Positions 479 to 39,400 of a stretch of 64,000 nt of DNA are shown here, piece after piece. Numbering within the stretch: the first letter of the stretch is position 1; every line of letters begins with the position of its first letter. A program made the position numbers and the translations under genes. Source of the stretch: Styela clava (Eukaryota); the NCBI RefSeq assembly GCF_964204865.1, contig NC_135260.1:9610001-9674000 (forward strand), read 5' to 3'. The notes under the pieces were generated by a model. That model searched no databases and was not told the DNA's origin. It saw only the letters and a program-made list of their open reading frames with translations.

Positions 479-3400
479 GTAAGTATATGAAATAATTAAT
501 CGTTATTTGAGCAATCCGGACATGAGACATCAGGAAGAGTAAAGGGGGTGGAAGGATGCAAGTCATTGAATTCATTTCTTGTTAGTATTACTCAAACAAG
601 TTATGACTGTTGGCTGACAAATAAAAGTTCCAACTAGTTGAAAGCTTAATTTCTGAGGCCATTGCCGAAAGTGTTTTGATCCTGATTAGGCTATACGTTG
701 TTCGTTTATGAATGCTTGTCTTTTGTATGAATATAATGTTCCATTTAGGGAACCATTTCTGGAGCCAGTACAATTTCGGTACTCCCGTAGTATGTGTATC
801 AGGTTAGGGTTAGGCCATAATTTTATTCCGATTTTCCTTATTTTAGTTCTATTACGAGTCCGGGAACTGTCTGTGTTAGCCAACTGAATGTACCCCTGCT
901 CATAGGTTTCAGTCCCTTTACACAACTTGATGTTAAGTAGGCGAACAAAATTAGTTACCTCCATGTTGGTACACATACTTCTTGAGCGCCCGGCTTTTAC
1001 ATTCAATAAATCAGATTTAATATATTGCCAAATCGTCCATACTTCAATGTAAAAACGACATACTTTATGAAGAATGACATGAAATCATATTGGTTCAGGT
1101 CACAAACTTTTGTATTGAATAATGATAGATATATTGAAGCTTAAAATAACTTTCAACACGTCATTTAAGCGATGTATGACTAAGTCTTGATGACTTTCTA
1201 TATTTCTTTATTGAAGACAATAGTATGGAATGCGACTGACGAATTTTGTCATATTTCCTGAAAGTTTCTTATTAGGCAACAAGTGAACCTATGAATTTGC
1301 GTTGAATTTTTGTTGTTATAAGTATTCCTTTTCTTGTTGTTGCGAAAAACTTGCTTTTCTGCTGCACTGATTTCTTTGAAATGCCACATTCTATTTATCA
1401 TTATTTCACTAACAAGTTGTTGTGTTACTTGATCCATCAATCCTAATTTTAACAAGTTATATATTGTGATCATGAATGGCCAAATCTGAATAATTTACTA
1501 TATTGAATACATATGAGATAATAAATTCTGATAACAAATTTCAATATTTATAAATTGGTCATATTTAGCAAAGAAATTGGAGAAAATCAATTTGGTAAAT
1601 GCAGAATAGATAAATATTAATTTTTAATTCATCAAATAGATTTGAAGTCTATGTTTTTCTTACCATATTATGCCAAATACTCAAAATCATGAACATTTGA
1701 ATCAAGCTGTTCTAATTTATTGTAAATCAAGAATTTATAATATCAAATGTGGCTAATATTCGAATATTCAATTCATTTTGGGCATTCTGGACCTGACTAG
1801 GGGGCGCTCCAGGAGTATGTGTATCAATATGGAGGTAACTGATTTTTTTCGCCTACTTCACATCAAGTCGTGTAAACGGACTGAAATATTCACTTGGCTA
1901 ACACAGACAGTCCCCGAACTCGTAATAAAACTAAAATAAGGAAAATCGGAATGAAAGTATTGCCTAACCCTAACCTGGTACATATACTACAGGAGTACAG
2001 ACTGAGGTATGTGTGTTGCCACCTTTCATATTACACAACACCATAAGCTTCCTATTTCAATTTTGTATTGCAGGTAAACATTGCATATCAACATGCATCG
2101 ACAACCTACGACGTTCCATGCACAGTTCGATGAAAAGTGCTACGAGTGATGCACAAGAGATATCACTCAGCACAGAGGGTGAAATTTCAGATCTAGATCT
2201 GGTCGATGCTCTCGTAAGCATAATGAGATTCGTCAGAGACACAGCCGACGTCACACAAATGATTTTAGAGGATTTTCGACAATGCAATGGCTACGGTTTC
2301 TTGACTGAATTTTTACTGAGGTTGGTGATTTATTAAATCAGTGAACTATTCTAAAGTGTTGATATATTTTGATTTTAGCATCCATAAATCAAGCATAGCA
2401 TAACATAGCATAACTGGATTTTCCTTTCATTTTTTTGATTAGCTACTATCTTTGGAAATTTCGAACTTGTTCCATTTTCGTTAATGGCAACCCGATTTGT
2501 AGAAGCATAAGTGATGTGGTGATAGTGATGTAGGGTTGATTTCGATTGATTGTCATGTTCAAGATTGGTTTTGATGGTGTTTGGATGAACGAAGCCTGAT
2601 CTATGGCCTAGAGAGGTCTATTTGATTTACTAGTGAGGAATCTAGCTTGATAAATATGCAGTATGGAAAAATTTACAACTTTCACAAGACATGGCAGATT
2701 CCTCAGTATCGTTTACTGCTTGACTGGGTCTTGGCTCAGGATGATGATTTCGCAAAAATCTTTTTATCTGTTCGTATTACCTTGTTGTGAAATATACTAG
2801 AAAGTAGAAATATGTTGAGATAACATAATACAAGAATAGTCTTCTCTTCCTTCATTTTATTGCAAAATATGAGACAAGGTGGGGCAAAAGTAGGCTAATA
2901 TCCTTTATTGGTTTGTTTCCCAACCTTTTATGGCTCGTGGCCCTCTTCGGAGGCTTTCAGCACTCATGGCCACCTGTTTGTCATTACAGTAGTATTTATA
3001 GTGTTGTTTTTATTGTTGGATTCCGAATCCCATCAGGTTTACCAAAATTGTGTGTGAAAAAACTTTGTCAAGCAATGAAACTGGGAAGAATGGGAGGTTT
3101 TCTTGTAAAGAGAAAAATAAAATAAGTTTCGCGCCTAGCATTGTGGCCCCCCTTCAACTGTTCTGTGGCCTCCGTGGGTTAAAGGAACTATCTACCAGCA
3201 TTGTATATTTGGCCCAGATACTTACGATTTTTGCATCTGCATCATTGTTTACATATTGTATGATTGTTTCATGACGATGTTGATGCAATTATGCAACTAA
3301 TGCATAGATGATTTCAGTTGGAATTTGTTAATTAAATATGACTCATTTGCATTCATTACATAGATATTAGTAATAATTGGTCACAAAAATATGTCATAAC

Positions 3401-21400: not shown

Positions 21401-24400
21401 GAAGTCTTACGGTAAAATCGGCATTTTTTGGTTCATAATGCACCACCATTTATTCTATATAGTTTGAGTACCTCTCGGCGCTTGGGTTGTTTCTGTGAAT
21501 TTACTCAAAGCCGAGTCCCCTCTACTCCTGTGTGAGTGGAAATGATCTTGTTTTTAGCAAATTCTGTTACTAATATATGTATTCCGATAATTTTACTTCC
21601 TTTTTTGAGAATTTATTATTTTGTAGAACAGTAATTTTTTGGGAAATTTTTCATTCAAAATATCTTGATTAATTGGATTGAATTACTTGACAATAATTAT
21701 ACTCTGTTTTTACTTCATATATATTGCAATTTAAATTTGAATTTTTTGTTTTTAAGGTTAATATTAATAATTCGCAAGTGCAATATACATGTCTGTCAAT
21801 TCACATAACTGCTAAAGATAAGAATATAATCATTTCAACACAAGAAGAAAACTTTGAACATATGGGTATAATAAACAATTTTTATCTTTGGATTATCAGT
21901 TGTTCAAAAGTAAATTTTAATTGTTTTTCATGGTTAGACCAGACGTGAAAACGCTAAAATCTCACTCTTGCTTATACTGATGACTCGAGGTTGACAAAAA
22001 TTTTGACTCTTTGCTTTCATGCCGAGAAAAAAAATTTGAACCAAAAAGAGAAAAAATTTCAGACCTGGGGTGTTTGAAAATACAACTCCGACTCTAGTAC
22101 CAATAAAAAAAAGGCCAAACGCCGACTTCGGCTTCACAACCGCGGGCTCAGATCGGCCAGCCTATTGATTTTGCATATTACAAACTTAAGCAGCTTTCTG
22201 CATTCCTGCTTGTACAGTGACTTAGTCAGGGCAATGATCAAAAAATATAATGGATGCCTTTAGACAGCAACTTATATGGAAGTTAACGTGATCACTGTCT
22301 GTTGCAGTTTTTTAGGTTTAAAACTTTTTTTGTATAAGCTAATAAATCAATGCAATTAGAATTATGCTTCTTAACCTCAACACACCCTATTTTAGGGGTA
22401 AATATGTAAATATTTATGTTTGCACTATTTCACAAGGTAATGATTTTAAATTTTATCCCACAGGTCCAGGTGATATAGAAATTGGGAACGAATTGATTTC
22501 AGCATCTGCAGTCTTTCCAACAAAAAAATCAATTCATGAGTCACAATGGTATCATATTGTTGTTGTCATCAACAAAGCAACTGTCTTAAAACACAGTACT
22601 GCTGCAGCATATTTAAATGGAAGATTGCTTGGGACATCAAAGGTAAAGAAAATCTATTTTTCATACAGGCTAATTAATAAAGGCAAGGTTTTGAGCTGTT
22701 AATCAGTGTTGAGGATGCTCGAGTCTTTTGCTCTACTCGAGTTCAGCTTGAGTCTCCAGTTATCAAAAACTCAATATTGACTCGAGTAATCTAAATGGAA
22801 GGACTTGGATTCGTCAGCAACGAATCGCCAGTAACCTGACTCGATACTCTGATTTCCAGTGACTTGACTTTTCCACGGATTGAGGTTCTATTTCGGTGAT
22901 GATGGTTTCATTGAACCTCTGCAGTATATTGATTAGAAATAGAGGCCTTGTGCATAATTTTAGGATTTGCGGAGTTGATAACCAGTAACATTAAATAATG
23001 AATAAATATTTGGAGTCATGATTGATGACCAAACACACTTATCTTTAGAAAAGCATCCCGCACAGCGTTTAATATTGCCGTTTCCTTGCCACACAATCAG
23101 TCCCACATGTTGTAAACGAACAAAAGTAAACACCGAAATGCGAATTTTCACTACCTCACACAAATAACTATGAGGGATGTATTGTTTTCATTCATTCCCC
23201 TATTTTTTTCCTTCCTAGTTGAGATACATTCACACAAATCCAGGCGGAAATTCAGCTAATTCTGCAATCCAAGTTCGTGCATATGTGGGTACACCACCAA
23301 GACTCAGTGCTCGATCTCCTCTACTTTGGCGCCTTGCATCCTTCCACATCGCAGACGATTCGTCATTTGTAACAGCTTCAAGTGTAGCAACTCAATATCA
23401 ACTTGGACCATCCTACATTGGAAATTTTCAAGCTGTACCTCTGTCTGGTCAGTGTAAAAATATAACACTATTGGCTTTTTCCATCATACACATATCTGAA
23501 TAATTCAATATAGTTGCGTGATGCAAGATTCTGTTGGACAATTTTCTGAACACACGTTCGAAAAATTCTTACCTTGTCATTCAGTTTTGTTTTTCGTCAC
23601 ATTAAAAAATATTTATTGCAATGGTCTTAATGAAAATAGGCTTCAATTGTTCGAAAAGTACATAGCTACAGCCATATGGAATACAGTATCAATTTTCTTA
23701 ATAATTCCCGGGAATTTTACAATTTTTAAAATAGTTTTTTCACATTGTTCGTCGTCTGTAATGAGTTCTATTCTTGGAAACCTTTGACAATATCTAGTCT
23801 TATAGCAGGGGTAGTGAACCACTGACCCACGTGACCCCCGATTCATTCTGTGACCCACCAAGTTACGAATTGATACAAATAAACATACTAGAATTTCGTT
23901 GCTAAAAATTTTCAGATGGAGGTTTTGGACCAGTTTTATCAGAAGAACATCTATGTTTCTCATTACATCCACATGCATGTGAAACATCATCTGGCGCTAG
24001 AATTCGAAGACAATGCATGAAGTTTGACAGCAAATCTATTGCAAACGAGGTAGACTTTTGTAACTAATTACTTTCAAGTGTGAAATTACGATGTACTGGA
24101 TTTTGTCAAATTAAAAAATTGGACAGGCTAGGTAGTCCACAAGTCTAAAAAATTAATATTGTGTATTTCGATTCTAATATCTATATCAAATGATCCCAGA
24201 ATTTAACGTTTTTCTTAATTGTTTTTTCATTATTAGCATTATATAGTATATCTCATGGTTTCTTGGGCTGGGCCCTTGGTGCCTCCACAAGGCCACAAGC
24301 AAAGACCTTTATGGATACCACAAAGTTTTTTTTTTGATGATTTCATCAATTTAATGTAGATAAATTGTGATTTGTTAAATCTTTGGACTGTAGTGCATTT

Positions 24401-27400
24401 ATTCTTTTTCTTTCATTTTTGTTACTGGACTTTTTGTTGATAAACATGGCTTATAAATAACTGGGATGAAAGCGAAACTCTGTATTTTTATACAAGACCG
24501 GTGGCAACACGTGCATAGAGACTCTGCCAGGGGCCATGGGTCATTTAGGTGTACCTAATAACATTTTATGAAATATTTCATCTTATATTATTGAAGGAAT
24601 GCTGAAACTAAGAGTAAAACTAGAGAAGGCTGGGTAACATTCATTAAAATAAAAATGACTTGACTTGCTTGTATCTAATCGTTAGCTTTCTAATCATGCC
24701 TTAGTATGACTATGTTTTCTTCCTCGTGGAATTACCTGGATTCATGTAGTGGACCAGATTAAAAATCGCCTATACCTGTGGTTCTCAAACTGATGATGAT
24801 CTTTGACCTCTTTCGAATACTCTCAAATATTTGTAGCCCCCTTACTCTTCTATAAATATACCTATTTTTACTTTTGTCATGTTTCCATCAGTTATTTTAT
24901 TCACCATGTTTAATAATAAAAAGCCAGCAAATGAAAGCAAAAGAATAAATGCATTACAATCAAAAAATTAAACGAATCACAGTCTTGACAAAATGAAGTT
25001 GAATGTTTATACAATACTTGTAGCATTGTTCTGTCACCTCTCATCAATTCAAAAATAATATTATTATATTTATAAACACCTGCAGCTGAAGTTGGGATTG
25101 AATGATGGTCTTACTCCAATTATTCTGGTCCGTAATTCTTGTTCCCATATGCCTGGCCTTGCAAGATCTGTTGGTGCTGTAGCAGTGTATGATCAAGCAT
25201 CTGCAGCTGTCAGAAATTTTATGCCAGGACAAGTAGCTAGAGTTCTACAGGTAATGTTTTGACTGTATTTATTTATTGTATGTATATATCAGGACAGGAT
25301 CAGAGCCTGGTCAAATTCATACAGACAGCAAATTTCGTAAAAAAAGAAGACTGGCTGGACGAAAATTTTAACTCAAAACTCCAGACTGAACACTCTGGCT
25401 TGACACAAATATTTACTCTGACTTGACAAAAATTTTGACTTCAGCTCCAGACTGAATACTCTGGCTTGACAAAATTTTTACTCTGGCTTGACGCAAATTT
25501 TTACTCTGGCTTGACAAAAACTTTGACTCCATCTGCAGACTGAAAATTCTGGTTTGACAAAAATTTTGACTTCAGCTCCAGACTGAATACTCTGGCTCGA
25601 CAAAATTTTTACTCTGGCTTGTCAAAAATTTGGACTTCAGCTCCAGACTGAATACTCTGGCTTGACAAAATTTTTACTCTGGCTTGACACAAATTTTTAC
25701 TCTGGCTTGACAAAAACTTTGACTCCACCTGCAGACTGAAAATTCTGGTTTGACAAAAATTTTGACTTCAGCTCCAGACTGAATACTCTGGCTCGACAAA
25801 ATTTTTACTCTGGCTTGACACAAATTTTTACTTTGGCGTGACAAAAACTTTGACCCCGGCCACAGACTGAAAACTCTGGCTTGACAAAAATTTTGACTTT
25901 GGTTCCAGACTGAAGACTCTGGCTTGACAAAAATTTTGACTTTGGTTCCAGACTGAAGACTCAGGCTTGACAAAAATTTTGACTTTGGTTCCAGACTGAA
26001 GACTCTGGCTTGACAAAAATTTTGACTTCGGCTCCCGACTGAAGACTCAGGCTTATCAAGTATTGTGACTTCGGCTCCCTACTAAAGACTCTGGCTTGAA
26101 AAAAAATTTGACTTTGAAATTCTGACTCTGAATCGTGGAAAAGGGGATTTTTCAAATATCACATTATGAATTTATCTTGTAAATATTATTCTTATTTTGT
26201 TACCAAATTGATTAATTTGCATGTTTGTTGAAAAAGACTATACAAGATAGGTGATTCTGCATGGTTACCCTAATTTTTATCAATATTTTTCTGAATTACA
26301 GAATGTTGGTGGCAGTGCAGTAATATTAAGTCTAGTTTCTATGGCAACTGATGTTGAAGGTCTATATGCTGCAGTCAAATCATTGGTTTGTATTGTTAAA
26401 AACAATCAGGCGGCTGCAAACGAAATGGACAGAAAAAGGGGATATCAGGTAGATATTGAGACTATCATTAAAGTTAGTTGTTTGCAGTGTTGACTCTACT
26501 CGAGTTACAATTGTCGAAGACTAGAAGTGGCTTGAGTCATCCAAATTGAATAACTTGGACTCGACTCTACTCTTGACTCAAGACTCGGATGGCCTGCGAC
26601 CTGACTTGACTTGCTACTTCGACTTTATCTATTTACTCTGAGTCTAGTTACCCTGTATTCTCGTTTCCCAGCACTGTTTCTACTGTACTTCACTCAATGT
26701 TTTCGGTTTGACCCATTTTATTACAACATGGGTGATGGGTACGAGATTCGAACTCAAGATGTGCATGTATACCCTGCAATGCCAGCAAAGCCAAAGCTAA
26801 CCATTTTAGGATGGGTTTATATATTTATCCTAGGGAAATGAAAGCCAATAACACGACTAAATCATATGGTGCACCACAGCCTTTTGTCCGGCCCCCAGTC
26901 CATATCAGATATAGGATTAGTTAGTCAATTATTTGTTTTCAATACACAGACTTTAATAACTATCCAGCTTTAAGGCTTTAACCATCGCGCATCTACAATG
27001 ATTGTCTTTATGAGGAACAATAAAAATTAACATTTCAAGATATATACTACAACATAGTATTTTAGTGGTTTTCAGATAATTCTGAAATTAACAAGACTCT
27101 AATTCTTTTTCAGGCTCTTGCAATGCATTTAAAAAGAAAGAAAGCTCTGTTAAATTCCCATGTTCTGCATTTAACTTATTCACTCGCTGGTACAGTAGAT
27201 GTTGGAAGAGAATCTGCAACCATTCCAAATATCACGGCTTTTGAAGATTTATTATGTGATTTGGAGGTTAGTCAAATTCTTTTACAAATCTATTTGTAAG
27301 CTGTGATTTTTCTTCATTATATTTGCAAACTGATTTTGATTTTAGGTTATTCGAGTTTGATATGATGGATATATTATATTTTGAATTATCTTTACAAAAT

Positions 27401-30400
27401 GTGTCCTAATTCTCAAATTGTGTATTTGTATTGATTTTGAATAGATAGTGGTATATCTCTCTGAGTAGATATGAAAAAAAATCCTACACTTTGTTTGATT
27501 TTTCGGATTTACCCAATTAAAGTAAAACTTTAGTAGGGATATGTCACTATTTACATATTCAGGTATGGCACAATGCTCCTGATGAACTACATCGATCACT
27601 GTTGGAACATATTTATGGACTTCTTACTGAATCAAGGTAATTAATATAAATACAGTATCATAAAGTGAACTACGGTAATTATATAAATAAACTCGAGATT
27701 CTAAACTACAGTTTATACCTCATAATTGAGTTTAAAATTTTAATCAAATAAAAATTTACTATTAAGCGCAAAATATTTGAAACCGCTATAATTTTTTTAT
27801 AGAAAAGCATCCTATTTTATCTAAAATTTTTGATGACTTTTTTGCGACAGATATTCTTTATGAAATAACTTTATTGTGTTGTGTGTTTCCATTGTTTCTT
27901 CTGTTTTAGTGACACAAATGAGAATTGCAAAATCATAAAAGAACGTGGAATGGTTAAACGTTGTCTTCATTTTGTGTTCGGAGATTCATCCCTCTCTTTA
28001 GGAACAATTCGTGCAATATTTCGAATCATTCAAGCATTGCTCAATACTTCCGGAAACCACTCAGATTTGCTTAGGTGGGTAACTTTTGTCGTCTAGTGTG
28101 GGCCAAGGTCTCCAAGTGGTTTTAAAACACTGATGCCATAAAATGACCCCATAACAATTTTTTTTATACTTGAAGCCATTAAGACATTTCACAATTTTTT
28201 ATTCTCGCTTTGAAAGTGTTGTTCACTCATATTATTATTTTGAAATATTCGAGCAGCTTCTATGGAAAAATTTTGAAAGTGTCCCAGCCTGACCCAGCTT
28301 TCTAACCAGGGGCCAAAAATTTTGCCCACCTATGCTGGCAGGCCGTCTGAGTGTCATGTAAAAAGTTACATTTTATGAACAACATTTACAGTGTTACAAA
28401 AGTAAAAGTGGAAAACAATAGGCCTCATGCCAAACCTATATTTAATTGCAATATCAACAAATTATTTTTTAGCTAAAACATCAAAATTTGGTTTTAGTTT
28501 GGTTGTGGCAGCATCAGGCGAGCCAGATTAATTCCCCTTCGGACAGAATTTGGCCCTCGGGTCGTGGTTTGCCCATGTTAGTTGTATAACCTTATCATCT
28601 TTACTAATTGCCCATTGCTATGGTTATAAATAAGGAGCGAAAATCTATTGTAATATTAAATAAGCTTTGTCCTTTGTAACATTTGTACAAAGCACATTTA
28701 TCATTAAATAGATTTGGTCAATTTCTTGTTTCAACTATTCCTCCTCTTGATGAGTATGAAACATCTATAGAGCTGAGTGAACCAGAGACTGATTTCAAGA
28801 AATGTACTCCAGTATCGACAAGTGCGGGTGAGTTAGTAATAAGCCTCTCAAAGCTATCATGAACCGTTTTTAGAGAGTGTCTCAAAATCGAGGCTGTGGA
28901 GTTGTAGTCGGGGTCGAGTCCTATTTTCAAACTACCAGGAGTCTGAGTCTTAAGTAGATATTTTAAATTCATAAAAATTTGAATTTTAGACATTTAATGT
29001 TGATAATTTGAAGTAAAAATATTTGAGTTGATTTAGTGAGACTTCTAAAAATGATAAAATATCGCGTACATGTATATTATATTGTTCATGTCAAAATGGC
29101 AATTTCTGTAGTTTTGCAGTTTTTCGTTATAAATGTTCTCTCGTAATATATGCTTGTTTCACTGTTGTGATAATTAGCGTCATTTTCATCAAACAAAATC
29201 AATTCTACAAGGATCAAACTTAAAAAAATAAATGACCTTTGTTAATTTCCAAGGTCATATCAAGAACAAACCATCTTATGCAGGCTTGCTTTCAAAATTC
29301 CGGCTCGCGGACACATTCCATGCGGCCCACAGAATAATTTTAGCATGCCCTGAATCATTGGCAATTGTTTGTATTTATTGGCAGAAAATTTTTGAATTAT
29401 TTTTAAACTATCCTTAAAAGTTATTGCGGCCCACCATCCTTGGACCACCCTGTCTTAATTCTTCACTTTACATTTGTAAATAAAATCTATACCATCCACT
29501 GGCAAAATTTGCAGAAATATTTTTACACGATAAATTATATAGTCAAATTTAATGAATATTTTCCTTAAAATGGATCTCGGAAAAATAATTCTTATACTTG
29601 CCATCGCAGAATTTTTGATGCTTTTTTCAAAAGTCTTTTCGTTAGTTGACACTTACAAACTGGTATTCATGTTTTATAACCATCATCTTGGTTCAAAATA
29701 TTAAACCTTGTGATGTTTTAAGTACTGCTAGCTAAGCTTAGCCTAGTCTAGCCAGCTTTATGGGGACTAATTTTTAATACTGCAACTGAGCTAATACTTC
29801 TTGGGGACAAAATGCCTATTGAATCAATGGCATAAAAACGACAAATGCATAGCTGTGACTAATATTTTATATTCACACTTAAAAATGTCCTTTTTGTGAT
29901 CGCTATATCTAAAATGGATTTATTTATTATGCCTGCCCTTTTGAAATAGCACTATACAGTCTCAACATTTCCCCCTCATCAGCACTGGTAAGTATCTCGA
30001 AAACGCATATTTTGCTGGCTTTACTTATTTATTTTATCAAATAGGATAATACTGAAATATTAACACATTTCACTGTGAACATTTTATTTAAATCGAATAT
30101 ACCCATTTTGGTTCTACATTCCTTTTGAGGAAGATTGCAGCTGTACTGTCTATAAATTTTGCCAACTTCACGTCAAGCATTGTTATTCCACCTTTATCAA
30201 ATGTGTAAAGACTCACTTCAACCTAAGAAAATAGGCAAGATATACAAAAGAAAACTTTTTTGGAAACCTTAATCATTACTTTTCTTTAGAATACAGAATT
30301 TCCTTCTTTAAATTTTTTTATTGGATATATAGTGTAATATTTGTTTCCTAAATTGAAGATAGAATCGTAAAAAAAACGCTTGTCAGAGTAAAATAATAGA

Positions 30401-33400
30401 TCCCTAATATTCCAAGATCACTAAATTTAGTTTATGTCAAGGATGTTTTGTCTTATTGAAATAGACATTGTTTTTCATAATTCAGCAAAACTGTTGTTCC
30501 ATACAAACCAAATTTAATGTCTGAGCAAATGTCACGATTTGAACTATATTTGTAAAATTGATGATTGCGTTTTTGTTAGAGATATCATCAATTTTCATGT
30601 TTTTAGCGTTAATTTTTTCAAACTAAAACAGGTTTGACGTACCGTCTTGTAGTTGTTCCTCCAGTCGGGATGGTGACAGACTGCCTCTGCTTTCAGTGCT
30701 ACTTTCGTCATGAAAGAAAATGCATCACCAAACTCTTCAAAAGTATATTTCTTGTGAAGCTTGGTTCCTTTTTTTATTGTTGCCCATCCTTCCTTTATCA
30801 GAGGTTCCAAAACTTCCTTCTTTTTTGTTGTCAGCTTTTCTGGCTGTTCAGATGGCAAACAATTGACGAGTGGGTCCATGGAATCCCTTTCAGAATATGA
30901 TACCCCAACACAAGTCATTATGACTAATGACAAAAGAGCAAGCCGTGCCATTGTCATTTCTTTGCAACTCAACTTCTTGATTAGAAATTCCACTTCAGCT
31001 TTCCTTATTTATAGCTAAATAGTGTGAATGTCGGGGAAATTTTTTTTGCTTCGCTTAGTGCCAAATTGTGTGCAAGTTGCATGAAAAAGAGATATTAGGC
31101 TTGAACTTTGAATAGTCTGCAAATGAAGCATTGTCTGACCTTTTTGTCCATGATTTTTGGGAAAATTAAGTAATACATCATAAAAAGACAGATTTGAGTC
31201 TGCTCATAACTAACTGTGAAATCAAATTTTAACATACCAGGGGTTGTGGTAGTGATGGAGATGACTTAATTTACGCCTATGCTATAATGCAGTGGTTCCC
31301 AAACTTTTTTCCGGGCGGCCCAAGGTCATGATAGAATACTAAACGGCATGTAGTACTTTTATGTCTGCTTAACATAGTGACTAATATAAAACAATCATTT
31401 TTACATGATATTTTTCGCCCGGAAATTACCTCAAAATGAAAAGGCGACGCTTGTTTGCCATCAGGGAGTTTTTGAAATGCTGGTGCGACTTTACTTTGCA
31501 AAATGAATGCTGCCAAGTTTTTACTCTGTGATACTTACGCATATACAATTACTATTGAGTAACACTTCAAAACCAGATATAAAATAAATAATAAAATGTA
31601 CTAGAAAATAAAATTAGTAACTTTTAGGTTTTTTGTTGAAAAACAAGCGACGCAAGAAAATTTGCAGACAACCCAGTTTTGGGTCGCGGCCCATAGCTTG
31701 GAAAACACTGCTATAATGAACCATGTTAACATGCCAAAATTTACTGCCCGATGCATGAACCATGTATCAGACAAAACAAAACCTGTCAACTGTTCTCAAG
31801 CCACACGAAACGTCAACGCAAGTTTCATACAATTTGTGTATATTTCTAGACTGATTATTATTGGTCTTCATTATCAAGGCAATAATCAATATACTATAAT
31901 TTGTTAATGTAATAATAAACAATGCAAACTTTTGATCGATTTTAAGATTGATGATCAAAGAGTAATATCACAAAATTTGTATAGTTCCTAACAAATATGT
32001 CTAACATTGATCACGATCTTATTTGGTACTTATTGATTAAAGTAAACTTCTATTACTGAATATTTTAATCGTCGATTGCAGAATCATGTTTTAAATCATC
32101 ACTGTGTTCGTTAATGATAGTTATATAACAAAAAAATTTAAGGTAAAATATTGGGCCGTACAAAACTTTAAATTTGAAATTCAAGAAAAAAATGTAAATC
32201 TGGGTCAACTTCTTTCATTTTTAATTTCTGAAAATTTGAAATCAATTGCTACATTAGTTGTGGAAAGAGTGTTTTTTACAAGCTAACAAAGCGATCCGTG
32301 AGTCCACTTCATGATCATTATATCTAAAAGGCTTATTTAAGACGGTTTATGCTGTCTTGCCTGTCCCTCTTAAAATAGCACTATTTAGTCTCAACAGTAC
32401 CCCCTCACCAGCACTGGTAAATATTTTCAAAATGAATATTCATTTGCTGGCATTATTCATTTATTTTGTCATGATGATACTGAAATATTAACATCAATAA
32501 AGCAGTTTGTGTACATGTTTAGGAATAATAAAAAAACTGTTTCTTTGTGTAATAAAATATCGAACTTATTAAAATTATGAAATATGACAACACATTTTCC
32601 TGTGAACATTTCATTTAAATCGAAGATATTCTCTTTGGCTCTACATTCCTTTTGAGAAAGATTACAGCTGCGTCGTCCATAAATTTTGCCAACTCCACGT
32701 CACTCATTGTTATTCCGCCTTTACCCCATGTGAAAAGAATCACTTCAACCTAGGAAAATAAGCAAGATATAAAAAAAATAAAACTTTTATAAAAATATTC
32801 ATCATTTTTTCCAATTAGCAATTATCCTATAAGTTCACTACTAAAATATATTACAGTCCCAGGACTCATGTATTTGTTGGTAAAATATGTTTTTTCTATA
32901 AAAATGATTAAATATTTTGATATTTTGAGTTACCTCATTAATTTATTTTTAGTACGGTAATCAAAGCAAATTACATAAACTCTGGGGAATTACTTTTCAA
33001 TAGGATACTGAATGAACTTGATTTTATTCTTTTTACTTGTGTGTAGTATTTTTAAATGAATAATTTGTAAAATTCACTCCTTAAATTTAAGAAAGATTAG
33101 TAAAAATGGTTATCGGAATAAAATTATAGATGTTTTCATGTTTTTGGGGTTAATTTTTCTAAAAAAAACAAGTTCAACATACCGTTTTGTAGGTATTCGT
33201 CCAGTTGGGATGGTGACAGACCGCTTCTGCTTTCAGTGCTACTTTCGTCATGAAAGAAAATGCATCAGCAAACTCTTCAAAAGTATATTTCTTGTGAAGC
33301 TTGGTTCCTTTTTCTATTGTTGCCCATCCTTCCTTTATCAGAGGTTCCAAAACTTCCTTCTTTTTTGTTGTCAGCTTTTCTGGCTGTTGAGATGGCAAAC

Positions 33401-36400
33401 AATTGACGAGTGGGTCCATGAAATCCCTTTCGGAATATGATACCCCAACACAAGTCACTATGACTAATGTAAAAAGAGCAAGCCGTGCCATTGTCATGAT
33501 TAGGAATTTCACTTCAGCTCCCCTTATTTATAGCTGAATATTGTGAAAATTTTATCTGCTTGGCATAGTGCCAAACTGTGTTCAAGTTACGTTGAAAAGT
33601 TATATATGGGGATTAAATTGTATGCAAATGAATCATTGACTGACCTTTTTGTCTATGATTTTTTTGCCAAAATAAGTAAAACATAAAAAGAATAATTTGA
33701 TTTATCAAGTACAATGATATTTGACATTTCATTATTAACAGACCGTTTGTCAAACAAGTAGGTGCTTTCTTTTTATTCCACTATTAATCAATTTAGCAAT
33801 GCTTTTATATATTGATTTTAGTAAACTTTTCCACTTTTTAACTTTAAACAAGATGACAATGCTTAAAAATATAAACGCAAAGATCAATTGACCTTTGGGA
33901 TGGATGGCAGCATTATTTTTTCCAAAATATGAAAAAATGGACGCTGTAGAAATTTGTGTACCAATATGGAGGTAACTAATTTTGTTGGCCTACTTTACAT
34001 CAAGTTGTGTAAAGGAACTGAAGCCTATGCGCAAGGGGGGTATATTGACTTGGCTAACACAGACAGTCCCCAAACTTGTAATAGAACTTGTAATAAGGAA
34101 AATCGGAATGAAATTATGGCCTAACTGTCAACAGGTTTTAACTCTCGACATTCTATCAACAGGTTTTATCTTATTTAAAACTCATTCAAGAAAACGTCTG
34201 ATTTCGTCTTATAAGCTTGGAAAACAATATCTTCCTACATTTCATTAGATTTCTTTGAATGTTTGTACTAGTTGCACAGGCCTTGTTTGTAGCCAAGGGC
34301 GAGAACTACAGCGTTGTTCTTATGCTTGTAGAAGAGTTGTTCTTCTCATACCTAGGGAGTCCCTAATACTGACCCTACGTACAAACAGTCATCATAGGTG
34401 AATTTATTGCAAGGTCCTCTTAACACATTTTACATTCATGTCATGAAATTTAACTTTAATAAATTATTTTCATTATTTATATTACATTACAAATAAATAA
34501 AAAAATGACCCAATAAAACGCTAGAGTTTGCTAGGCTTGCAAAAGTTGGATAAGTCTCATTATCTGTTTCTTTAAGGAAGAAACAATGCTGCTGCAACAT
34601 CAATAAACTTTGCCAACGCTACATCATTCATTGTTATTCCATCTTTGCTCCATGTGTAGAGTGTCACACTAACCTAAACAAAATTCATATTATGAAGAAG
34701 ATCTTTTTATGTCTGGGGGCCATGTGCAAAAACTTTCATCTGGTACCAATTCACAATTACTTCTTCAATTTAAAGAGGATTGACTGTGATTTATTCAATG
34801 TTCTATTTATTGTTTTGCTTTCATTTGTTGACTATTCAGAATTAAATGTGGTACATAAAATAACTGATGGAAAAATGGTATAAGCCAAAACTAGATATTT
34901 GTTTAGACGAATTTATGTAATCATTGTACATCGCACCTGATGAAGGTTTTTGTAACGGCCTCAGTGAGCTTATCTGTGGCTGCTTTGTGGGTTTCGAGGG
35001 CCCACTTTGAGAAACCTTGAACTAAAACAATGAAAAAACAACAATATACCCTTTTGTATAAGTTTTCTAACAAAGGATAGTGGCAGACTGAATTGACTTT
35101 TAATCCAACTTTGGTCATGAAGGCTGCAGCATCACCAAATTCTTTGAAATCAAGGTTTTTCCGTATTGCATTTCCATCGTTAACAAGAGTCCAACCGCTT
35201 TGTATCAGAGGTTTCAAAACCTTTCTTTCTTCTTTCGTCAACTTTTCTGGCCACACAAGTCCGTGGCAGTTTATTAACGGATCATGGGCATCTATTACAG
35301 AATAAGATGTACCAATGCATGACATGGTGACGCACAACAGTAACACGATTTTGACCATAGCCATTTTTTCTCCTCTGTTACCATTGGCTTACAAATTTTA
35401 ACGAACATTATTGTCTTTATATATAGTATCTTCATTCCGAATATAAAAAAATGAGATTTTTTTTCTGATTTAATGCATAAATTATTACCATGCACCATCA
35501 ATTATCCATACACTGCGTGACTAAATATTCTGGAAGTTCTCGTTTTTTAATTAAATATTCAGATTCGAGATATTTTTAGTTGGTAATATGACAGTAACTG
35601 AAACTTCTTCAGTAGTTTATTACCATACTTGTCAGAGTAGCATATATTCAACTTATTTTATCTTTGAACTTCCTGTTAAAGTGATTGGAATAAGTAATAA
35701 CGACGACGTCAACATGATCTATAACGATTTATAGCTAATGACCCTTTGTGTCAAAACACAATTATTCGACTAATGTTGATTACAAATTAGCATACGCTGT
35801 GTAGGCTTTTTCCAAGCTTTGATAATAACATGCAGCTTCTACTTTTTTGATGCAACTTTTATGTCACATCACCTCACAAGGAACTCCTACATGATAGCCG
35901 TCTAGTATAATTTACAAATGGTTTTCTTAATTGATATGGCAACGTATATAAAGAGCATCTTTTGTCATATTCTCTTTTCTCTTATTTTTCTCTGTTGTTC
36001 GGAATGATTTTTTTAGTTGCAGAATCCCTGTTTATACAGAGAATGTATTTGGCTTTACTCTGATTTAATGTTAAGGTGGTACTTTGTGCAAGTTTAAAAA
36101 TAATCATAATTCATTAAGTAAAATTTAATAGACAAAATATATTTTAGGACAATCAACTTGAATTTAAGGGAAATTATTGTATTTAATCAAATATTGAAAT
36201 AAAATGGAAAATAAGAATGGAAAATATAAGTGACGATACTTAATGTTTAATGAACCTTTAATAAATTAGTTTGACATGTCGAAATTGGGCGCTGCAGAAG
36301 TGTGTGTACCAAAATGGAGGTAACTAATTTTGTTCGCTACTTTGCATCAAGTTGTGTAAAGGGACGAAAGCTTATGGTCAGCGGGTATATTCAGTTGGTC

Positions 36401-39400
36401 TCCGAACTCATAATAGAACTGAAATAAGGAAAATCGGAGTAAAATTAGTGCCTAACCCTAACCTGGTACACATACTACGTTAGTACCAAATAGTTTACCA
36501 TGTCGAAATGGTATTTAATGAAAAAAAAACATTTTCATCATCGCAGGCAAGCAAATCATGTGTTAATTTGTTTAAATATCTTTTCAACGATACAAACAAA
36601 TTAACACAATAATTGCTTTCCGTTGCCAGTGAATTAGTATTTTTTTATCAAATTCAATTTCGAAGAAATGATGTATCTGCAAAACTATGAGTTCAATTTC
36701 TTTACATTTGTCTCGTTTCATTGGTTATTCAACAACCAAACTTTGACATAAATTACCATGATTATTTTTTTTACTAAAAATTTTCTGAGAAAATACCAAC
36801 ATGACTTTGAATTGATTCCAGATTCTTGCAGTCGAAATTTGCAGTTTTTGTAGATTTAATGAAATTTTGATTGTTTTGCAGACTATTTTCAAATCAATTA
36901 CCGGTGGCTCATTATTCATATTTGTTCTAATCATGTTTTGTAATAACATTTTTTTTTACAAAATTCATTTTATTATCTAAAATATTGATCTTTGCAAAGT
37001 TTGTTGCTTTTATATTCTACATCTATATCATTTTCAGGCCAAACGAGTATTTACATTTATTTGGTCTGCATCTATTTGACTGCCACCATTGATTTTTACC
37101 AATATAGTTCTTTCATCGAGTATTATATTGGATTTTTAACTTTTTTCCACATCTCCTTGGCATCTTGATACATTCTGTCCCCATCGCATTGTATCTATAT
37201 GGTGTTTTCCTGAATTCGGTTCTCAACTGTGTAACTTTGCGATTTTCAAAATACATGGTGACTATTTGCCATTTTGGAAATGAGTTTTACTGTGCTCTTT
37301 TTTTTTCTGGTATGGGAAATTATATTAATGAATTCTGTATCTGCCACTGGTTGGTATTAACAATGAATAAAATTGACTTGTTTAGGTATTAAATCAAGAA
37401 TAGTGAACCATTCACTTATGTTTTATTTTTTATTCCGTTTCCAATATTTCCAATTTGAATTCCAGATCCAACAAGAATGAACAACAATGTATGTGAAAGA
37501 ACAATACATATGAGAAACATGGGAATCAAGTTGTTGAGAGAATGTTTGTATGAAGATGCGTCTGGCAAACCAAATATAACGTAGGTTCTACTGGTATTTC
37601 TATATATCTAAAAATCTGTTCGTGTTCTTACTATTTTTGTTATCCTGAAGGTTTTTCCTATTTTAATTCAAATTGAATGTCTACATCTCGTTACTAATCT
37701 TCAAATCATTTGCATGCACATCAATGCAGAATAATTATTTTTTAGAAAAGCACACCATCTTTCATGTAACCTTGTATTTCTAAAATAAATCTATCCATTA
37801 TTTTATAAGATAATTGTACGGGAAAACTGTACCATCTAGTTCAGGGGTCGGGAACCTTTTTGGTCAAGAGAGCCATAAAATATACATATTTTCAATTGCA
37901 TTTCCGTGCGAGCCATATAACATTTCTTCACTTAATCAGGCCTGAAATGTTTATTCAAAAGTCAACACATACAATGTCAATATACATTTAATGTGATTTC
38001 TGATGCTGCATGTAGTCGCTGCGGGCCTTGAACGGTTGGTTGCTCACATGCAGCCCAAGTTAAAATCTACGATACTCATCACCCTTTTTTCTTAGGCATC
38101 TCCGTAGTGTTTTTAAAACTCACAATGTCACAATATATGTGATGTCACAATATATGTTCCAAAATCCCCTTGTTTGTCACAATGCCTGTCTGGTAATTAT
38201 CTTACATAACATAGCCATGTGCTGGAGGCGCGTTCTCAAACGCATTGGGAATTTCCTGCCAAATTTGGCTATAAAAGAGTTTGAAATTTTGTAACAATAG
38301 TAAGCTTAGTCTTGGGATATTAGATTTTTCTGGGAGCCATATGCCGTCACCAAAAGAGCCATATATGGCTCGCGAGCCATGGGTTCCCGACACCTGATCT
38401 AGTTCATGCTTATCCCAGAAAAAAAAACAGTTGCCATGAAATAAATTTAATGCGAATCATCAGATTTTCTAGGCAAAATAGGAAATTTATATTTGGCATG
38501 TCAAAGATATGTTTTTTTGTATTAGGCTGTTTGCTTAAAACATGGCTCTGTGCAAGGAAGCATTTATTGTCTGAGGAAATACAAATTCTGCATGAGCCAG
38601 CTTCTCTATTTAGCTATCGGCTTTATTAGCTTTATCATTAATATTTTATTTTATAGGTTCTGTGAGGATATTCAACGAACGTTAGGATGGGATTGGATGC
38701 TGCTATTCATGCAGGAGAATATTCATTCTTCTACTGTGGTTGAAATCACACTTCTGCTATTGGAAACACTAAGGTATTACTAATAGTGTCAGATACTTCA
38801 ATTTCATTTATCATGTTTTATGAACCACTGGAAAATTTGAGAATGTTGAATAAATTGACCAGAAAAATCTGCGTAAATCTTCACAAAATCATAGCAATTG
38901 AATTTAGTGCTACAAAGATATGAACTGTTTTATTAATTTTCTCTTTATATGTAGAGTTAAATTGATGTTATTTTTGGTTTATCTGTCAAATTTTGAAATG
39001 AATATAATTTTAAACTATATTTTAAATCAAGAATTTGCTGCATTGAATGCAACCAATTTCGAATGTGTTCATATTCTCACAATTCCTAATTTACTACACA
39101 TTTTATATAGCCCACACTGAAACGATCAGTGTATGTCCAAAAGAATTCAAATTGATTCAAAATTAATTATATTGGATATTTCAAATTCTTGATTTCGGGA
39201 ATATCTCAAATAAAGCTTAGAATATACATAGACTACTTTGTTGAACATAAACATATCCGATATTCCATATTGATAATATTATTTTAGAAAGTTTTCGAAA
39301 TAGAAAATTACATCGCCATCTCTGGCAATTGAAAAACATTGTTTATAATGTATTTTCCCCGGCTATAGAGTCGCTTTTCTGTACCTATTTTTATGGCCTG

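Follow-up and report, generated by a model that had tools for sequence, protein, structure and literature searches.

Pterin-4a-carbinolamine dehydratase (PCD), or DCoH, is a moonlighting protein that recycles tetrahydrobiopterin (BH4) in the cytosol and mitochondria and acts as a cofactor of HNF1 in the nucleus. Its catalysis is carried by three histidines, the pair of the HHP motif and the His of T-H-D, called the third His below. Here we describe three tandem genes of this family (genes A, B and C, together the trio) on the minus strand of a 64-kb window of the ascidian Styela clava; the window is the whole stretch of DNA analysed, and coordinates refer to it unless they are preceded by C14. 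We read the trio as an S. clava tandem family of exported DCoH-fold binders or pseudo-enzymes, which would have arisen from a duplicated canonical PCBD, and we give this sequence-based reading a probability of about 0.6. The trio shares PF01329 and the fold with PCBD1/DCoH and PCBD2/DCoH2 (PDB 1DCH, 1F93, 1RU0, and 4C45) and is 35–40% identical to these solved structures, and genes A and B retain the HHP loop and the conserved Asp of PCBD1 and PCBD2. Unlike PCBD1 and PCBD2, the trio has a signal-like N-terminus of 22 residues, a Cys-bearing extension of 17 residues and two conserved Cys. Moreover, Trp or Phe stands at the position of the third His, gene C reads HYP, and the gene is triplicated in tandem.

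The nearest functional analogy to the trio lies in plants and bacteria. RAF2/SDIRIP1, a type-2 PCD-like protein of plants, and the carboxysomal acRAF have lost dehydratase activity and been re-targeted through their N-termini, and RAF2 and acRAF are Rubisco assembly factors (PMC5972614). They differ from the trio in using a plastid transit peptide or residing in a bacterial microcompartment, in belonging to unrelated lineages and in the residues that were lost; the acRAF structure 4LOW was a weak Foldseek match to the trio model. To our knowledge, tunicates have no Rubisco.

In animals, a PCBD-like protein of Diaphorina citri with a predicted signal peptide was put forward in 2025 as a salivary effector candidate, and its expression in planta altered the flg22-triggered burst of reactive oxygen species (PMC12695838). 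This is likewise an animal protein of the PCD family whose secreted status comes from a predicted signal peptide (PMC12695838). It differs from the trio in coming from an insect, with 80% similarity to a whitefly PCBD, and in having been picked from RNA-seq rather than from a saliva proteome, and it is not evidently related to the Styela clade. A further parallel is found in AaaH1/2 of Toxoplasma gondii, aromatic amino-acid hydroxylases with signal peptides, where an enzyme of biopterin metabolism that is usually cytosolic has likewise acquired such a peptide (PMC2653193). AaaH1/2 belong to a different family and retain catalysis, unlike the trio, and the PCD of T. gondii is not described there as signal-bearing (PMC2653193). 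The earlier note on this DNA knew of no described secreted PCD family. That statement holds only in part, given the D. citri candidate and the signal-bearing homologues in public data that are presented below.

Membership of the trio in the PCD family was examined with the exons of the window, which were searched singly, while the RefSeq proteins P0001, P0002, and P0007 stood in for the spliced products. Exon 1 matched PF01329 (Pterin_4a; the family is also COG2154) with 52.8 bits in gene A, 53.9 bits in gene B and 36.6 bits in gene C, compared with a cut-off of 26. It spans profile positions 2/6 to 63/64 (6–63 in gene A), and exon 2 spans positions 65 to 89/90 (65–90 in gene A and 65–89 in gene C). 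The profile therefore continues without a gap over the splice junction, which confirms the splice model. An AlphaFold2 model from an alignment of 99 sequences had a mean pLDDT of 83, with values above 90 over residues ~40–140. Foldseek aligned it to DCoH, DCoH2, and PCBD2 with TM scores of 0.89–0.94 and an rmsd of 1.0–1.6 Å, the top matches being 1F93, 1RU0, 3HXA, and 1DCH, and the ESM Atlas yielded no clusters other than ordinary PCD ones, none of which reached 0.9. The assignment of these genes to the PCBD/DCoH fold, which the earlier note had proposed, is borne out, since both exons of all three match PF01329 and the predicted fold agrees.

The N-terminus was assessed by rules (n-, h-, and c-regions and the -3/-1 rule) rather than with a trained predictor. 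In all three proteins, residues 1–22 include a single basic residue (position 5) and are free of acidic ones. The hydrophobic core is uncharged, spans 12–14 residues and has a mean Kyte-Doolittle value of 2.7–2.85; Gly occupies position -5, and Ser-Tyr-Ser fills positions -3 to -1. The mature N-terminus after residue 22 is acidic. Many PCBD homologues of animals carry presequences that are amphipathic and rich in Arg; these leaders do not resemble them, and by the rules applied they have the shape of a classical signal peptide and not of an organelle transit peptide, as had been suggested for the 22 residues before. Only ~41% of the 22 leader residues are common to B and C, yet the hydrophobic profile and the motif G-x-S-Y-S are kept, so that function, not recent copying, seems to preserve the leader. 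The canonical start Met aligns to about residue 40 of the trio proteins; therefore not only the 22-residue signal but also a further 17 residues are new. Within this extension, D-P-L-[VI]-N-C is conserved.

The predicted mature chains are 13.0–14.6 kDa in size with an isoelectric point of 7.9–8.8, compared with 5.8–6.8 in three canonical forms. Their maximum 19-residue hydropathy is 0.93–1.39, without any hydrophobic stretch of membrane length, and no membrane anchor, KDEL-like or other ER-retention end, or hydrophobic C-terminus of the glycosylphosphatidylinositol type was found in them. Each mature chain has exactly two Cys, whose positions are the same in all three: Cys33 lies in the extension and Cys94 immediately ahead of the HHP loop, and a single disulfide between them is probable. 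The barnacle and bacterial canonical forms that were compared lack the conserved pair, while the Oikopleura form has two Cys. The signal peptide would keep the trio products away from HNF1.

The active site was changed in every copy. The third catalytic His is Phe in gene A (T-F-D) and Trp in genes B (T-W-G) and C (T-W-S), and in the alignment with DCoH2, Trp113 of gene B falls on the His of its T-S-H-D motif. In gene C, moreover, HHP has become HYP and the upstream Glu is Asn. Among the close homologues with a readable motif, the third His is kept in 267 of 284, and Trp was found only in S. clava proteins. None of A, B, and C possesses the three histidines that the dehydratase (EC 4.2.1.96) requires. 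The replacement of the third His throughout, together with the pocket changes of gene C, therefore indicates that the trio proteins most likely have little or no activity as 4a-carbinolamine dehydratases. The PCD signature proposed by Naponelli and co-workers in 2008 is said to allow Trp at the third-His position.

The origin of the trio was traced in the whole genome, which contains the three copies and only one canonical PCBD. The canonical gene lies at C14:7869541-7870769, on the same chromosome and 1.77 Mb from the trio, and has no N-terminal extension. Its phase-0 intron is at the same codon boundary as that of the trio, the junctions reading ...Y-N-K / V-Q-I-T-L-S-T-H-D in the canonical gene and ...Y-K-T / V-E-V-... 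in the trio. The intron position and phase shared with a gene on the same chromosome therefore argue for DNA duplication of an animal PCBD, and retroposition is excluded by the same shared intron. Units A and B (Table 1) are ~1.3 kb long; in self-BLAST, their promoters, exons, and 3' flanks are 82–84% identical, and the middles of their introns are not alignable. Between A and B, the synonymous divergence (dS) is 0.08 in exon 1 compared with 0.23 in exon 2. This difference, together with chimeric models in the older assembly of S. clava, points to gene conversion or unequal exchange. Comparison of A or B with C gave a saturated dS (>2), a nonsynonymous divergence (dN) of 0.40 and a dN/dS of 0.15–0.19. 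The low dN/dS relative to gene C indicates long-standing purifying selection and therefore that the genes are genuine.

In a maximum-likelihood tree, the signal-bearing Styela proteins were monophyletic (97/90) on a long branch, and the canonical Styela PCBD, entered as exon 1 only, fell among ordinary animal PCBDs. The Styela clade adjoined P0056 and P0096, two signal-bearing proteins with a His-to-Phe change (94/91 support). This grouping is probably due to long-branch or convergent attraction. Horizontal transfer was considered for these neighbours of the clade and rejected, because the trio shares the position and phase of its intron with the canonical PCBD.

Several observations weigh against export combined with a loss of catalysis. 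HHP, the Glu that precedes it by four residues and the downstream Asp are all retained in genes A and B, and residual dehydratase activity is possible. The RefSeq model of gene A, P0002, has 136 residues and starts at Met14 within the hydrophobic core, without the signal. The pLDDT of the AlphaFold2 model was only 54–71 over the signal and extension. With no more than 35 nt between its TATA box and ATG1, gene B would have a very short 5' untranslated region, and the predicted leader of gene C holds an out-of-frame upstream ATG (35382-35384, minus strand).

The retained residues of genes A and B, together with the Toxoplasma hydroxylases that bear signal peptides (PMC2653193), would fit still-active dehydratases which recycle BH4 for local hydroxylation, either extracellularly or within the secretory pathway. 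The Trp that the PCD signature is said to allow would suit this explanation as well. Such hydroxylation could be of the dihydroxyphenylalanine/trihydroxyphenylalanine (DOPA/TOPA) type on ascidian blood-cell peptides, for example. Ascidian blood-cell peptides carry DOPA/TOPA-type residues. We consider this explanation unlikely. The third His is lost in three of three copies, and gene C also lacks the second His and the Glu. Furthermore, the S. clava genome has three loci for aromatic amino-acid hydroxylases (PF00351), which is the ordinary complement; a secreted partner hydroxylase was considered and dropped, as no extra copy exists beyond these three. Recycling also needs dihydropteridine reductase and reduced nicotinamide adenine dinucleotide (NADH), neither of which is expected outside the cytosol. 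Because the third His is gone everywhere, only the ordinary three hydroxylase loci are present and BH4 recycling needs a cytosolic reductase, a binder is favoured, and an extracellular dehydratase role is less likely than a binding role.

It is also improbable, to a similar degree, that the products are intracellular PCD-like pseudo-enzymes or DCoH-like cofactors, with an N-terminus that is left untranslated through a downstream transcript start or that serves as an organelle presequence. The Met14 start of P0002, the short 5' region of gene B and the upstream ATG of gene C would all suit this explanation, as would the mitochondrial-type extensions on many animal PCBD homologues. Against it, the single basic residue and the uncharged core of 12–14 residues do not make an Arg-rich amphipathic leader, and the features of the leader and its reading frame are kept across paralogues with saturated dS. 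In addition, the RefSeq models of genes B and C and the models of the older assembly begin at Met1, the TATA boxes stand 5' of ATG1, and the mature proteins have the conserved Cys pair that is absent from the barnacle and bacterial forms, though Oikopleura has two Cys. That the genes are functionless, as duplicates in decay or as artefacts of annotation, is very unlikely indeed: the dN/dS of A versus B (0.63 overall, 0.79 in exon 2) and the variation of copy content between assemblies would fit, but in each of the three genes the open reading frame (ORF), the splice sites, the TATA box, and the poly(A) signal are intact, strong purifying selection has acted between the old paralogues, and the fold model is confident.

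The distribution of the trio was surveyed in public data. A search of a word-indexed database with exon 1 found S. clava only, and HMMER, run exhaustively over 1.84 billion representatives, gave only S. clava paralogues among the close matches. A profile search of 5.8 billion proteins detected no orthologue, the score falling from 255 bits to 108 once the S. clava proteins had been passed, and a metagenome scan returned one generic PCD of 45% identity and nothing closer. The family is thus lineage-specific as the earlier note had supposed, in the sense that every database searched yielded S. clava only; this restriction applies among the sampled databases, with other tunicate genomes lying outside their coverage.

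Signal-bearing relatives with altered active sites were present among the homologues in public data. P0006, P0008, and P0009, from environmental or transcriptome data, have a signal-peptide-like start followed by 2–4 tandem PCD domains, and P0006 has a C-terminal membrane anchor; in all four of its domains, the third catalytic His is Asp. Signal-like N-termini were found in four of the seven close non-Styela homologues with Phe or Tyr at the third His (P0056, P0073, P0074, and P0096), compared with 8 of 267 with His, counts that are uncorrected for shared ancestry. Among named sequences, those closest to P0073 are canonical PCBDs of barnacles and nematodes, which bear extensions of the mitochondrial type. 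From these sequences we tentatively propose, as a possibility that is still doubtful, a recurrent and undescribed class of signal-exported PCD/DCoH domains, in which the third His is swapped (mostly for Phe, Tyr or Trp) and the former pterin-turnover pocket may serve as an extracellular module for binding ligands; the trio would be one instance of it. A candidate of 6954 residues with "18 PCD stretches" (P0010) was discarded as a compositional match, being rich in Glu and Thr and without HHP motifs. Separately, the PCD homologue P0132 of the mollusc Nucella lapillus (KAL8573859.1) has 190 residues, with a signal-like start, an insert of ~80 residues and then a canonical domain that retains the His.

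The trio was also compared with the deposited protein models, in which its product is named "putative pterin-4-alpha-carbinolamine dehydratase". The two-exon product of gene B is an exact match to XP_077973817.1 (P0001, 149 residues), and gene C differs from XP_039273102.1 (P0007) by 2 residues over the whole protein. The older S. clava assembly has four signal-bearing models, among them P0003, P0004, and P0005. In P0004 and P0005, exon 1 is of the A type but exon 2 of the B type, and the Phe-bearing exon 2 of gene A is absent from the models of that assembly. These models suggest copy-number or haplotype variation plus gene conversion. A literature search found no paper on the trio or its RefSeq accessions, or on Styela clava together with pterin.

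Under the favoured reading, the trio would have formed by duplication, at the DNA level, of the canonical two-exon PCBD, with the gain of 39 N-terminal residues within exon 1, namely a cleavable ER signal (residues 1–22) and the 17-residue extension. The product would enter the ER co-translationally and be cleaved after residue 22, at Ser-Tyr-Ser, to give a soluble mature protein of the DCoH fold with one Cys33–Cys94 disulfide, which would then be exported or stored in secretory vesicles. There, the old pterin pocket may bind a pterin or another aromatic small molecule, or the helical face of DCoH may bind a partner protein.

The features of the locus are collected in Table 1. Exon 1 is 315 nt long in each gene, and the intron is therefore of phase 0. 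The introns measure 420 nt in gene A, 433 nt in gene B and 376 nt in gene C, with GT..AG splice sites and polypyrimidine tracts (the GT donor of gene A is at 30642). The earlier description of three intact two-exon minus-strand genes agreed at every coordinate with the sequence and the ORF listing, including the phase-0 intron common to all three and a TATA-like box 35–61 nt 5' of the first ATG in each. The upstream ATG of gene C has a strong context (A at -3 and G at +4) and lies 20 nt before the start and 3' of the TATA box. Its frame overlaps the main start and, if transcribed, it may damp the translation of gene C.

Table 1. Features of the trio and of the surrounding host intron (window coordinates).
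Feature	Position	Strand	Remarks
Gene A exon 1	30643..30957	-	105 codons: predicted signal peptide, 17-aa extension, first 2/3 of PCD domain
Gene A exon 2	30088..30222	-	44 codons + stop; matches RefSeq P0002
Gene A signal-peptide codons 1-22, predicted	30892..30957	-	Rule-based analysis
Gene A TATAAATA box	31006..31013	-	56 nt 5' of ATG1
Duplication unit of gene A	29930..31197	-	Promoter, exons, 3' flank; self-BLAST
Gene B exon 1	33183..33497	-	PF01329; residues 1-105 of XP_077973817.1 (P0001)
Gene B exon 2	32615..32749	-	T-W-G in place of T-H-D
Gene B signal-peptide codons 1-22, predicted	33432..33497	-	Rule-based analysis
Gene B TATAAATA box	33525..33532	-	35 nt 5' of ATG1
Duplication unit of gene B	32358..33700	-	Self-BLAST vs gene A unit
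Gene C exon 1	35050..35364	-	HHP -> HYP; PF01329 match
Gene C exon 2	34572..34673	-	33 codons + stop; T-W-S in place of T-H-D
Gene C signal-peptide codons 1-22, predicted	35299..35364	-	Rule-based analysis
Gene C TATA-like box	35416..35425	-	~57-61 nt 5' of first ATG
Host intron around trio	28828..37465	+	GTGAGT donor at 28828; CAG acceptor ending at 37465

The trio is nested in an intron of a gene on the opposite strand. BEACH-domain exons lie on the plus strand at C14:9676619-9679799, 2.6–5.8 kb past the window end. Because the plus-strand donor and acceptor pair is followed downstream by these exons, the host is a BEACH-family gene. The earlier note had named it WDFY3; the nesting in an intron of a BEACH-family gene holds, WDFY3 is a putative identity, and no FYVE match was obtained near the downstream BEACH exons. 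A ConA-like lectin match at 22364-22699 was just below the cut-off. Pfam searches with nine plus-strand ORFs gave two families on one ORF, both below the cut-off, of which Laminin_G_3 was the better (27.0 vs 27.6 bits), and sequence searches of the PDB for the identity of the host gave no match. The minus-strand ORF at 25674-25973 encodes an internally repeated peptide motif in units of ~20 residues, which suggests a tandem DNA repeat in another intron of the host gene. In addition, a dispersed repeat with 83% identity was found at 36282-36398, 5' of gene C, and at 33934-34053, 5' of gene B. An ORF fragment near the window start (686-1006, minus strand) resembles it, and the repeat is probably a remnant of a mobile element.

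As for annotation, the dehydratase name given to the trio in RefSeq is unsupported by the active site. If the reading of the trio as exported binders or pseudo-enzymes is true, it would represent a third use of the PCD/DCoH fold, extracellular or vesicular, and a natural example of a new function reached through an N-terminal extension and the loss of a catalytic residue. In this invasive fouling ascidian, the trio proteins could bear on the chemistry of the blood cells, the tunic or the pigments.

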